Assembly (NCBI GenBank): GCA_964199315.1
Contig: OZ116707.1
Coordinates: 8,680,001-8,744,000, forward strand
Length of the DNA: 64,000 nucleotides
Reading direction: 5' to 3'
Source: Orbicella franksi
Taxonomy: Eukaryota
Shown here: positions 36,557-41,613 of the stretch, piece after piece
Layout: each line of letters starts with the position of its first letter
Position numbering within the stretch: position 1 is the stretch's first letter
Program-made: the position numbers and the translations under genes
The notes under the pieces: generated by a model
What the model saw: the letters and a program-made list of their open reading frames with translations, nothing else
Told to the model about the DNA's origin: nothing
The model's database searches: none

Positions 36557-38074
36557 GGATCAATATCAGCAGCTGGGCAAAGTCCCTTACGTAAAAAACT
36601 TACTAAAATTACTTAAAAGTCCCCTATGTAACTACAACAATTTAAACTGTTACAATTACTGTCCGAACCCCCTATACAGTTCTGTTGTCCTAAAAGTTCC
36701 AACTTCCAACTTCCCTTATAATTCTTAAAATTTTTCAAGATTCTTAAATGTCTTAGAGGTTCGAACTTTAAGAGTCCTAAAAGTTCGAACTTTAAACGTC
36801 CTTAAAGTTCGAACTTTAAGAGTCCTTAAAGTTCGAATTTTAACAGTCCTTAAAGTTCGAACTTTTAGAGTCCTTAAAGTTCGAAATTTAAGAGTCCTAA
36901 AAGTTTGAACTTTTAGAGGCCTTAAAGTTCGAACTTTAAGAGTCCTAAAAGTTCGAACTTTTAGAGTCCTTATCAAACTTTTAGAGTCCTTAAAGTTCGA
37001 ACTTTAAGAGTCCTAAAAGTTCGAACTTTTAGAGTCCTTAAAGTTCGAACTTTAAGAGTCCTAAAAGTTCGAACTTTTAGAGTCCTTAAAGTTCGAACTT
37101 TTAGAGTCCTTAAAGTTCGAACTTTAAGAGTCCTAAAAGTTCGAACTTTTAGAGTCCTTAAAGTTCAAACTTTAACAGTCCTTAAAGTTCGAATTTTAAC
37201 AGTCCTTAAAGTTCGAATTTTAACAGTCCTTAAAGTTCGAACTTTTAGAGTCCTTAAATAAAGTTCGAACTTTAAGAGTCCTAAAAGTTCGAACTTTAAG
37301 AGTAATAAAAGTTCGCACTTTAAGAGGACTAAAAGGACTAAACTTGTTCTATATATCAGCACCGCTAGGACTCTTCAAAGTTGTGGAAGGTATAGCAACT
37401 AAAAATGGCTCTTAAAGATATGATTCAGGCTAGTGTTCTGAAGTCAATCGGTGTAGTTGAAGATCTGACTCAGTTAAATCTGACTGGCGGGTTCAATCAC
37501 AAACGTATGCTTCCTTTCTCCCTCACCTCCCCCCGGCACCACCTGTCCTCGCCCAAAATAAAAAATTGACTTCTAATAGTGGGTCATTTTGTAATTCAGG
37601 CACTCCGTTTGTGTTAAACTAAGTCAATATGGTGGTGTATCAGCAAAGCGTGTAACAGGAGGTGAAACTGTTTATTTAACTCAGCAATAAACAACATATA
37701 TATCAATGATTACAAGTTTATTCTTTCGCCGATTTATACAGCAATGATTCGATGTTTTTGAAATACAGATGCAATGATTGCAATGGCCAACCTGTTAAAC
37801 TATCAACTTCATACAACTTTAAAAGTTTCTTAATGCAATACTTGTAACAAAACTAAATCGACTGTCTTAAACTCCTACATGGATTCGCATTTTGGTAAAA
37901 ATATTGACCCATTAATCATCTACATATCATTGATAACTAAGGTAACTAAGGTAATTGTGTAGTAATAAAGTAGTTTCAAAAAGGTCAAAAAAGATTCTTT
38001 TCATTCAGTGGTGAAATGCTAAAAGTTCTATTTGTTTTATTTTTATTTGTTCATTTATTTATTTAACCAGCATT
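36557..38074 (+). repeat. Left TIR (1518 bp)
   Basis: Reverse complement of 57916-59358; few substitutions or indels outside the minisatellite. Confidence 0.97.
36759..37325. repeat. 24-bp palindromic minisatellite in the left TIR (~23 units)
   Basis: Unit GTTCGAACTTTAAGAGTCCTAAAA; core palindrome AAAGTTCGAACTTT. Confidence 0.95.
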
Positions 38075-41000
38075 GGCTCTAAAATTTCCATTTTGACCAT
38101 TATTTGTTCCAAGCTGCGGGTTAGCAGGCGTTGGCTTATTTCCAACTGTTTCCCCTCAGCCAGTTTAGCGTTGTGTACAACGTGGATGGACTGGTTACCG
38201 TTTGCTGTTTCCATGATGAAGCTATGATAATAAAGCAGTGTTCTCAGAAAAAACATGTTTAGTAGCAAGACATTGAGCTTAGTTTTTCTTATCAAATATG
38301 ATTGTATCGTATGTAACACCCATAATGAAATGGCAGCTATACCCATAATGTATAAAATATCGAGCTCATAATTTTCAGTAGAATTCCGACTACATTTCCG
38401 TTAGAAAACGATTTCCAATAATCTTCAAGCCGCAGCAAAATCCCGCAGACTGAAATGGTTTTTGAATCTTACAGTTGTTCTCCCGGGCTCACTGTTTCAG
38501 TGGTAAAGATTTAGGTTTTAAGTTGCATAATGGTTTGGTAACTTTATTTATTAGTAGTGTTTGCAATCAATTTATCGAGTGGTAACTTAATAATTACATC
38601 TTCCAAGCATTAGAAAACCAGAAAACGTTATTATGTGGACTCCTTCCATTCACTGCACGCTTACAGAACGGCTGTTAGAAAACGTGTTCAGCCAATTGGA
38701 TTGTAGCATTTGGAAGTATACTATAAGAATTCTATTAATAACCAATGGTGCATACCTTAAATCAAGGTGGATGGATTCAACGCCTTGAACATATTGCAGG
38801 GCAAGGAAGTCGTCTTTGGCAAACAGTCTCCATTTTCGTTCCCACTTCTCAAAGAGGGGCGAACAAATAATTTGGCTGCGCAATGGAGTGGGTAATCGCC
38901 ACTTAAATACGCCAATGACTCCAGTCCCTTTACTTTTAATGTTGAGGGACATCTAAAGGAAGATGACATTGCGTTAAAGATTATTACTTTCCATTCCAAA
39001 CCACTACTTATATTAAACAGTTACTCGGACATTAAATCCAAGCAGGATAAGATCAAGCTAAGAAACTGAATCCCAAGGTGATCCTCTTTCTTTTTTGGAA
39101 ATCGTACCCGCGTGTTTGTTTTCTTGTAGTATTTGATGTTTGGTTGGCCTATAGCCTAGTTACGTCCCCGATATCAAGAATTTGTTGATATTTCATCTGA
39201 GAACACTTTGATATTATAATAATTAAAAAGTGCAAGTCATAAAGGGTATTGTTATTAGTCTTAATAATGTTTTAGCAGAGAAAATCAGTTACCTTTTCCA
39301 AGGATTCCCAGAGCAAGTTTGCCCGATCTTTCTCCAAAAGGGAAAAGTGGCGCATTTGGTTGTTGGCGATATGGTCATGTAATTGCCCTCTTCTTAGCGC
39401 TTGACCACATCCTTTGACTTGGCAGATCGTCATCACGGCATCGCAAGTCATGGTGTGAGAAGGTATCAGACAACTTCAGGAAAGAAACAGAAGTATGTTG
39501 CTCTATCAATTATTGGAGCTTAGAATGCTTCGAGGTAACTGTAAAACTCGTAATCGAGTACCATTTGCGCTACGCAAATTATTTTTGGCCTGCATAATAT
39601 ATTACGTTTTACCATTTTCTATTATTTTTTGGGTATCCTTTAAAATTAACATTCTAACGCGCAACAGTTTCAGTAACACTCCAACTAGCGCGAGACAAGA
39701 CGGGGACAAGAGCGCGCGCACGAAGCGTGAGAACGAGCGCCAAGCGCGAGGTGTACTGCAGGCTATACTCTAACAAACTATATATGAGTAAAAAATTTAA
39801 TAAATGACGTTTACGACAGAAATATAATCCTGGATATAATGCTAGGAATTATCAGGAGCCGGTACCGAATGACGCGGAAAGAGCACCTTTTCGATCACAT
39901 GCATGAGCGGTAGCGAGCAAAGCGATCAGGCAGGAATGAGTCTGGTGAAGAGGCACCCAAAAAGTTACTGTCTCGCCTCGCGGCTTCCTCTCTAGATTTC
40001 GCGCTGCGTAAATGCTAAAACATGGAATTAAAACGACTGTTGGCTTTTCATACAACGAATTCGTTCTGACCGGTGGTTCGAATGATGTCACTAAGGTGTC
40101 AAAAATTCCTTGACACCTTCACTGAATGATTCGATACTTTCGAGAGTGTCTAAACTTTGTAATTTTTAAATCTCAAGAAACAGTAAATAAACTGTCTGCA
40201 TTCGCGCACCGAATCTCTGCAATTTTCATTCCAAACGTTGTCAAAACTCGTTCAATGTTATTTGCTCTTGTGCGGACAAATGACAATAATTGTTCCACTG
40301 AAGGACCTGAAGCTGCATGTGGTGAGGTGGAAGCTAAGCTTATATCAACTTATTTTAAAACTGTTTTGATTCCTTTGTTGTACGCTCGCTCCGCATCCCG
40401 ATTTGAGGCAATTTCAGATGGTTTAATTAAAGCCTTGCTTCGTTTTCGCAGCAGTGAAATTCACACCTTTAGCAAAGGGCCAAAGGTTATATTACGTAAC
40501 CTCATCAAAATTTCTGCGTCCCGTTGACCTCATGGATAGTTCAATGATAATCTAACAGAAAGCAAAAAAAACCAGAAACATTTTCAAACAGGATTGAAAC
40601 TCCCTGTTTGCTAATACTGATGGTTTTCTGACTTTTGTTTTACGCCCGGATTTACGCCGCGAGAGCGAAAAACAATATTCGGAAATCTGCTCCACTGGGG
40701 TGAGAGCTATGAAACAAGCGCGATTCCAGATTGCGCGAGACAGTAAGGGAAAATCATAAAACAAAATAGTAGGATAATATACCATGAAAAAAAATGAGCA
40801 CTGTATTGCCCTTATTACACAGCTTTCCCTGGAGAAAGTCATGTCATGAAATTGTTTGCGATTTGAGACCAAGTCATCAACATGTAAGTGAGAATGAAAA
40901 GTTGCAGACTGATAGCTCGTTTTAGTAAACAATGAAAATGATGAATTACGCTTAGTACTCAACGTACCTCTTAACCATTTCACTGCACTTTAAGGGACAA

Positions 41001-41613
41001 GCAATTTCCCTAAGTGCGCACTCGGAGTCCTTATGAACAGCCTGTTCTCTTCTCTGTAGCTTCTCGCCGCATTCGCAATCGATTTCCACCATAGGACACA
41101 CTTGGACGTGGTTTCCCTGATCGATGCGTCTTAATGTTTCGCGACAAAGATCGCACGTAACATCTGTTGAAGTACAGCTTTCCACATGTCTCAGTGCAGT
41201 GTCCAGTGGGAACTTTTCCGAGCAGGCGCTGCATTCCCCCTCTTTTGTACTGAGCACGTTCAACGCGAAATGGTTCTTACAGAAAGTACGGACGGGCTGT
41301 CGACACAACTGACAGAGCACAGGGCCGCTCGCCTCTTGTATAATTTTTTTTACGCAGCATCCACAAAATGTGTGCCCACAGGGTGTTGCGATTTGCGCAT
41401 CGATTATTGGGTTATAACTGCAATATAAATCAGAAGGGCCACATTGTGAAATCTTCAAACTGGTAGAAATGGACAAAGAAAAGAAATTATGTTACGACAT
41501 TATAGCAATGGTATGTTTTCCTACCAAACATTACAAAGCAATTCCTGTGGAAGATCTTCGCTAAACCGTACATAATCGAACACTTGCTTGGATGGCATGG
41601 TAAAGCTCATCAT
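38059..41613 (-). CDS. TRAF-like E3 ubiquitin ligase (C3HC4 RING, five TRAF-type zinc fingers, divergent MATH-like domain), 5 exons, 359 aa
   Basis: Exons 41613-41525, 41417-40968, 39473-39293, 38952-38756 and 38221-38059; all introns GT-AG; 1080 nt with no stops. Splicing rebuilds the RING (CNVC|YNP...CGHTFC..C...CQLC) and a finger (CPLKCSEMVK|SCLIPSHTMTC). Confidence 0.88.

Follow-up and report, generated by a model that had tools for sequence, protein, structure and literature searches.

In the 64,000-nucleotide stretch of Orbicella franksi contig OZ116707.1 analyzed here (the window, in whose coordinates positions are given unless another locus is named), an intact five-exon gene for a protein with a RING, TRAF-type zinc fingers and a predicted MATH domain lies within a giant 22.8-kb Merlin-type transposon. 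We consider it probable that this TRAF-like gene is one of the three genes of the element, alongside a transposase gene and an orphan gene, and that it is a long-term resident of this element lineage in stony corals.

The TRAF-like gene is on the minus strand (41613-38059), where five exons joined across GT-AG introns give a stop-free coding sequence of 1080 nt and a protein of 359 amino acids (aa). An earlier reading of the same letters, made without database searches (the sequence-only reading), had proposed this uninterrupted frame with identical start and stop coordinates. Exon 1 (41525-41613, minus strand like the others) begins with the ATG at 41613, stops after the first RING cysteine and two bases of the codon for the second, and aligns with the N-termini of RefSeq homologues. 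Exon 2 (40968-41417), which matches Pfam zf-C3HC4 and zf-TRAF, encodes the remainder of the RING, zinc fingers 1 to 3 and half of finger 4; the other half follows in exon 3 (39293-39473; Pfam zf-TRAF, E 0.0085), together with finger 5 and a short helix. The predicted MATH-fold domain is divided between exon 4 (38756-38952; GVFKW ... CSPLFEKW ... WRL), which aligns with the homologues, and exon 5 (38059-38221), which ends with the stop codon TAA at 38061-38059 and whose final 5 codons lie within the inverted repeat of the element. Three AATAAA motifs (38036-38063, minus strand; starts at 38063, 38047 and 38041) overlap the stop or lie just past it, within the inner end of the inverted repeat, and are putative poly(A) signals of the gene. 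All four introns are GT...AG, and the open reading frame (ORF) and all eight splice sites are intact. Because intron 1 separates the first two RING cysteines and intron 2 interrupts zinc finger 4, no single ORF shows the TRAF-like protein, and its absence from the list of ORFs is explained just as the sequence-only reading had supposed.

Two variants of this model were rejected. An in-frame acceptor for exon 2 at 41459, 42 nt upstream, was ruled out as RefSeq homologues have no 14-aa insertion there, and a donor 4 nt past the end of exon 2, which would give the 'KRY' of the homologues, was ruled out as no in-frame acceptor fits it. A 133-aa ORF in intron 2 (40126-40527) is seen again only where the same intron has close copies, and so does not belong to a general repeat.

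In a phmmer search of 1.84 billion representatives, exon 2 has only 267 relatives at E<=1e-3, and the best matches are mostly single-exon ORF fragments of 120-250 aa. Some of the clusters also hold full-length proteins, namely XP_044167886 (Acropora millepora, 358 aa), KAK2565021 (A. cervicornis, 358 aa), XP_068696152 and XP_068752970 (Montipora, 357 aa each) and a third Montipora protein of 359 aa; NCBI names the Acropora and Montipora homologues TRAF3/5/6-like. The window protein is collinear from end to end, with small gaps only, with XP_044167886 (46% identity), XP_068696152 (Montipora foliosa, 44%) and the third Montipora protein (42%), and shares all of its zinc ligands with these three. 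The exon structure is thus supported by independent RefSeq gene models, that is, by homology. A partial model from Desmophyllum pertusum is a further member, which extends the family to robust-clade corals. In the most distant relative tried (L019, 34% identity), exon 2 alone was seen, and neither the terminus motif nor a transposase was found at that locus.

The N-terminal half of the protein is readily assigned. We ran Pfam on the window exon pieces and on full-length homologues, with cut-offs of 21 bits for zf-C3HC4 and 27 bits for zf-TRAF. Window exon 2 alone scores over the cut-off for zf-C3HC4 (26 bits, E 8.7e-6; 26-33 bits in homologues), and all 8 ligands of an N-terminal C3HC4 RING are present once exon 1 is joined. 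For zf-TRAF, exon 2 falls slightly below the cut-off (24 bits, E 6.6e-5) and full-length homologues score above it (34.5 and 29.9 bits); five CCHC/CCHH units are readable in the 359-aa protein. In the AlphaFold prediction for the Acropora homologue, five beta-beta-alpha modules come after the RING (pLDDT 60-93) and precede a single 13-residue helix, and the best matches of this N-terminal model in the PDB are TRAF6 RING-zinc-finger structures (3hcs, E 8e-10). The RING and five TRAF fingers named in the sequence-only reading are therefore borne out. A trimerising TRAF-N coiled coil was not found; in the homologue model its place is taken by the single 13-residue helix, which spans residues 217-229 between finger 5 and the MATH domain, and about 25 residues separate these two in the window protein. 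The sequence-only reading was right that this segment is brief, but what it called a very short coiled coil is one helix, and the long coiled coil of TRAFs is absent.

Sequence profiles do not detect the C-terminal domain. Pfam detected no MATH domain in the window exon 4/5 pieces or in the C-terminal parts of two homologues, the profile of the C-terminal alignment had a single match, at chance level, among PDB sequences, and hhalign against four bona fide MATH domains aligned only the first 23 columns, at a probability of 11%. In the full-length AlphaFold model of the homologue, the last ~120 residues are disordered (pLDDT <35). When AlphaFold was applied to the C-terminal domain of the Acropora homologue by itself, as a 46%-identical proxy and from an alignment that also included window exons 4 and 5 and sequences of other loci, the resulting model had a pLDDT of 87.4 and a pTM of 0.79. 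Foldseek matched it to the MATH domain of SPOP (E 3.9e-6, TM 0.72), VIA Z values were 12.7 for SPOP, 11.1 for the TRAF-like domain of USP7, 9.6 for TRAF6 TRAF-C and 9.0 for TRAF2, and all 30 listed matches among Swiss-Prot models were MATH or MATH-like, including four Dictyostelium RING/TRAF-family proteins. A language-model look-alike search returned MATH, CYHR1_TRAF_C and Sina at scores of ~0.8, which we take as a lead only. From the Acropora homologue, the C-terminal domain of the family is thus confidently predicted to be a compact MATH fold of ~115 aa, and the MATH-like C-terminus proposed in the sequence-only reading holds at the level of the fold. Overall, the models and profiles support an architecture of RING, five TRAF fingers and a MATH fold, without the TRAF coiled coil.

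The element that contains the gene spans 36557-59358 (22,802 bp). It is bounded by inverted repeats of ~1.5 kb, the left at 36557-38074 (plus strand; terminus GGATCAATATCAGCAGCTGGGC, with 24-bp tandem repeats at 36754-37335) and the right at 57916-59358 (minus strand), both found by comparing the window with itself using BLAST: 36825-38074 matches 59170-57916 at 94% over 1265 nt, and 36554-37250 matches 59361-58668 at 89%, with the 24-bp tandem repeats present in both arms. Both termini start GGATCAATATCAGC (5'-GG) and are flanked by an exact 8-bp target-site duplication, AACAAGTC, read directly at 36549-36556 and 59359-59366. The TRAF-like gene is the leftmost gene and is transcribed outward toward the terminus. 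Upstream of it on the same strand lies a Merlin/IS1595-type transposase gene (47371-49602, minus strand) in three stop-free coding blocks, with a Pfam DDE_Tnp_IS1595 match at 47374-47736 (37 bits against a cut-off of 27, E 4.2e-9). Head-to-head with the transposase is a multi-exon orphan gene (49794-57884, plus strand), parts of which recur in related elements: window 49881-50262 corresponds to 2243-2624 of a public contig (L018) by tblastx, and 54975-57905 to 3325-6044 of another (L002) by blastn. The hallmarks of Merlin elements are an 8- or 9-bp target duplication, 5'-GG termini and an IS1595/IS1016-type transposase, with inverted ends of 24-462 bp (Feschotte 2004 via PMC8101967), and the assignment of 36557-59358 as a bona fide Merlin-type transposon is supported.

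Two direct copies (88%) of a repeat of ~265 bp flank the element, at 36281-36541 and 59362-59628, and the element was evidently inserted between two tandem units of this short repeat. In a 91-93% variant (L004), position 43739 is joined straight to 41650, so element variants differ by an indel of the ~2.1 kb upstream of the TRAF-like gene (41651-43738, with ORFs at 42409-43226). At 40030, in intron 2, contigs of two RNA-library runs and a 99%-identical public contig (L003) all break and continue into unrelated sequence; individuals probably differ here by an insertion or a structural polymorphism.

Other copies of the element bear on how long the TRAF-like gene has been part of it. The 185-kb public contig L002 contains a 14.5-kb element of ~80% identity to that of the window, with inverted ends of 1 kb and an exact 8-bp duplication, CGAATGTC; its TRAF gene occupies the same end as in the window, a part of the orphan gene occupies the opposite end, and no transposase was found in it. 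The L002 copy is a TRAF-bearing element that inserted independently. In L018 (2243-16774), order and orientation are kept throughout, from the start of the orphan gene through all three transposase blocks and the TRAF-like gene to the terminal motif. Between the L018 and window lineages the transposase is ~70% identical at the aa level (67-73% across the blocks) and the TRAF-like protein ~45%, so the TRAF-like gene evolves faster than the transposase.

The association extends to loci in other genera, reached via short ORF members of the RefSeq protein clusters. Downstream of the TRAF-like gene, at a distance of 1.3-5.5 kb and always in the same orientation, the terminal 22-mer of the element recurs with 1-4 mismatches: at an Acropora locus whose gene product is 97-100% identical to XP_044167886, at two distinct Montipora-like loci within one assembly, and at L015. 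The chance expectation per 20-kb locus is from 5e-6 (<=2 mismatches) to 1.4e-3 (<=4 mismatches). The annotated ~358-aa 'TRAF3/5/6-like' proteins of Acropora and Montipora thus appear to belong to the same transposon-linked family, and the check put forward by the sequence-only reading, whether the closest paralogues lie within the same inverted repeats, came out positive in that relatives adjoin the same element terminus.

Some of these loci are rearranged. At two Acropora loci (L011, 10345-14763; L012, 10344-15023), the arm from the TRAF stop codon to the terminus (~2.4 kb) is duplicated in tandem, so that two terminal motifs occur at a distance of 2.4 kb from each other. In L010 (13802-16149), a YqaJ/viral alkaline-exonuclease ORF and a DDE_Tnp_4 ORF, both probably nested insertions, separate the Montipora-like TRAF gene from its terminus, and a YqaJ ORF also lies downstream of the TRAF-like gene of L013.

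Comparison of the copies indicates constraint on the protein. The dN/dS ratio is 0.35 against a 93% variant (exons 1-2) and, against L002, 0.22 for exon 2, 0.10 for exon 3 and 0.16 for exon 4; the comparison that the sequence-only reading had suggested thus gives 0.10-0.35 between copies. The exons are 89-94% identical to those of L002 at the nucleotide level (94% for exon 3), as against ~79-83% in the surrounding DNA. Taken with the decayed copies described below, constraint along the lineages is a pattern expected of a transposon's own genes. Since place and orientation are kept across divergent element lineages and there is purifying selection between copies, the TRAF-like gene is best read as an old, resident gene of this element lineage in stony corals and not a recent pick-up. 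The sequence-only reading had described it as transposon cargo; this holds in that the gene lies within a Merlin-type element, but it is not supported in the sense of a captured host gene, since the gene has been resident across lineages whose transposases are ~70% identical.

Several observations weigh against this reading. The MATH fold comes from a model of the Acropora homologue, not of the window's own protein, and sequence profiles miss it. In L002 the TRAF gene is broken: 8 nt are inserted in exon 1, exon 4 has two stops (TAA and TAG) and exon 5 has gaps totalling 13 nt; the TRAF-like genes of L018 and L015 have apparent frameshifts. The six latest differences between the window gene and near-identical copies are all non-synonymous (0 synonymous, 4-6 non-synonymous changes), too few to reject neutrality. 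We mapped reads of two poly(A) raw-read runs with the same species label, and also used two sets of RNA-library contigs. The poly(A) runs gave 2-3 partial reads, all at 41575-41741, and zero junctions; the RNA-library contigs pass unspliced through the introns and are therefore DNA or pre-mRNA. Protein searches with the family yielded RefSeq models only, and no full-length spliced product from any transcriptome assembly. The sequence-only reading had looked to RNA-seq junctions for support and had counted a lack of expression or splice support against itself, and the runs mapped contain neither; splice support for the gene appears to come by homology only, with no sign of expression of the window copy in these runs. 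Finally, E3 activity, targets and a benefit to the element are matters that we purely infer.

The region covered by the partial reads has an unusual depth profile. At 41575-41741, which contains the start of the TRAF gene and its putative promoter, two unrelated sets of RNA-library contigs show an assembler depth of ~800x, compared with ~10-100x around it, with loose ends at 41675, 41684 and 41722. The core of this spike (41670-41698) is a hairpin-like stretch that is single-copy within the window, and a search of 41575-41741 against Rfam gave no match. In run X3, depth is ~100x over 40030-41547 and <=20x over most of the remaining gene, with 43x in the single bin before 40030.

On another explanation, the TRAF-like gene might be, or have become, a coral signaling gene under selection at the level of the host, with Merlin as the vehicle that duplicates it. 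The intact 357-359-aa members annotated by NCBI in Acropora and Montipora, the occurrence of the family in the robust-clade coral Desmophyllum, dN/dS values below 1 and the fact that coral species differ in TRAF copy number (PMC5730576) would all fit. A host gene is nevertheless not expected to be tied to the element terminus at the loci inspected across ~45% protein identity, to be present in several copies per assembly at different sites, or to decay as transposon copies do, and the poly(A) runs show no expression of it; we regard this explanation as unlikely.

A different possibility is that a host TRAF paralogue was captured once and has been hitch-hiking since, with no role for element or host. 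Such a passenger would be in keeping with the lack of detected expression in the poly(A) runs and with L002, a non-autonomous copy whose TRAF gene is broken and which still has a clean target duplication; because of that duplication, transposition evidently needs no TRAF gene in cis. An intact five-exon frame of 359 codons with all zinc ligands kept is unlike a neutral passenger, however, as are a dN/dS of 0.1-0.35 and a position held while the protein diverged to ~45% identity, and we think this account very improbable. We give slightly less credence still to the idea that the window copy is a silent pseudogene, intact merely because its insertion is young. Essentially zero poly(A) coverage and recent substitutions that are all non-synonymous relative to near-identical copies speak for it, but the two arms of the element already differ by 6%, the ORF and all eight splice sites are intact, the transposase blocks are stop-free too, and transposons are normally silent in one adult sample.

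If, as we consider probable, the TRAF-like gene belongs to the element, its product may act as an element-encoded ubiquitin ligase or adaptor. The RING-zinc-finger module would recruit an E2 enzyme and the MATH domain would bind a short peptide in a target. Through these, the protein could tune a pathway of the host that deals with stress, apoptosis or innate signaling around transposition, or it could control the element's own proteins, and the element copies that keep the gene would be the founders of new lineages. One more specific form of this idea, that a giant coral Merlin lineage with three core genes uses a RING-MATH ligase as a host-manipulation effector, we put forward tentatively and judge to be rather less than even in its chances; such an effector might damp or redirect stress, apoptosis or innate-immune signaling triggered by transposition, or it might control transposase turnover. 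The sequence-only reading had pointed to the TNFR/TLR-NF-kB signaling in which TRAFs act; for the coral protein such a role is hypothetical.

The protein resembles the TRAF family in having a C3HC4 RING followed by TRAF-type zinc fingers, with TRAF6 the closest solved structure to the N-terminal homologue model, and in its predicted C-terminal MATH/TRAF-C fold; the Dictyostelium RING/TRAF-family proteins are the closest in architecture. It differs in its size of only 359 aa, in the 13-residue helix that replaces the trimerising coiled coil, and in a MATH domain (~115 aa) that is structurally nearer to those of SPOP and USP7 than to TRAF-C and is missed by Pfam MATH. Moreover, its exon 2 is ~30% identical to canonical TRAFs and the gene is encoded within a transposon. 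The element, in turn, shares with the Merlin superfamily (IS1016/IS1595-related) a DDE_Tnp_IS1595 transposase, an 8-bp target duplication and 5'-GG termini, but it is 22.8 kb long, has inverted ends of ~1.5 kb, much longer than those published, with 24-bp tandem repeats, and contains two more multi-exon genes.

Precedents for such a gene in a mobile element are few. The nearest that we found is Burro, a group of giant Gypsy-like planarian retrotransposons with RING-type, MATH_TRAF_C and apoptosis-related motifs, for which a review suggests meddling with host ubiquitin and apoptosis systems (PMC6431247). Burro elements are long terminal repeat (LTR) retrotransposons in which these motifs lie in a long polyprotein region, whereas the coral element is a cut-and-paste DNA transposon with a separate, spliced and complete RING-zinc finger-MATH gene. 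Pack-MULE and Helitron-style elements also have host-like coding sequence between transposon ends, mostly as gene fragments, full-length captures being exceptionally rare (PMC6431247); the coral gene, by comparison, is complete, has kept its place in divergent element lineages and shows purifying selection. A captured fragment of the Pack type is ruled out by this completeness, by collinearity with the RefSeq proteins and by retention across lineages whose transposases are ~70% identical. In the literature searched, we found neither a DNA transposon with a TRAF-like gene nor a Merlin with extra genes described.

The window contains a second transposase outside the Merlin element. An uninterrupted 527-aa ORF at 29629-31212 (minus strand), ~5 kb away, has THAP, HTH_Tnp_4 and DDE_Tnp_4 domains (E 1.5e-49) and is a Harbinger-type transposase.

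To our knowledge, Merlin elements have been described as small, with the transposase as their sole functional gene. The coral lineage has elements of 15-23 kb, kilobase-long inverted ends and two extra spliced genes, one of which holds the full domain set of an E3 ligase or adaptor from the innate-immunity toolkit. Should the protein act for the element, this would be a rare eukaryotic cut-and-paste transposon that encodes a host-interaction factor. Were it an effector, it would be to cut-and-paste transposons what ubiquitin-ligase mimics are to viruses, and the element would be a transposon-driven source of the expansion of 'TRAF' gene counts in coral genome annotations. Some coral genes annotated as immune TRAFs appear to be transposon genes, and because the RefSeq TRAF3-, TRAF5- and TRAF6-like proteins of Acropora and Montipora would be members of this transposon-linked family, the numbers of 'immune TRAFs' counted in corals, and claims of their lineage-specific expansion, need checking for transposon-borne copies.

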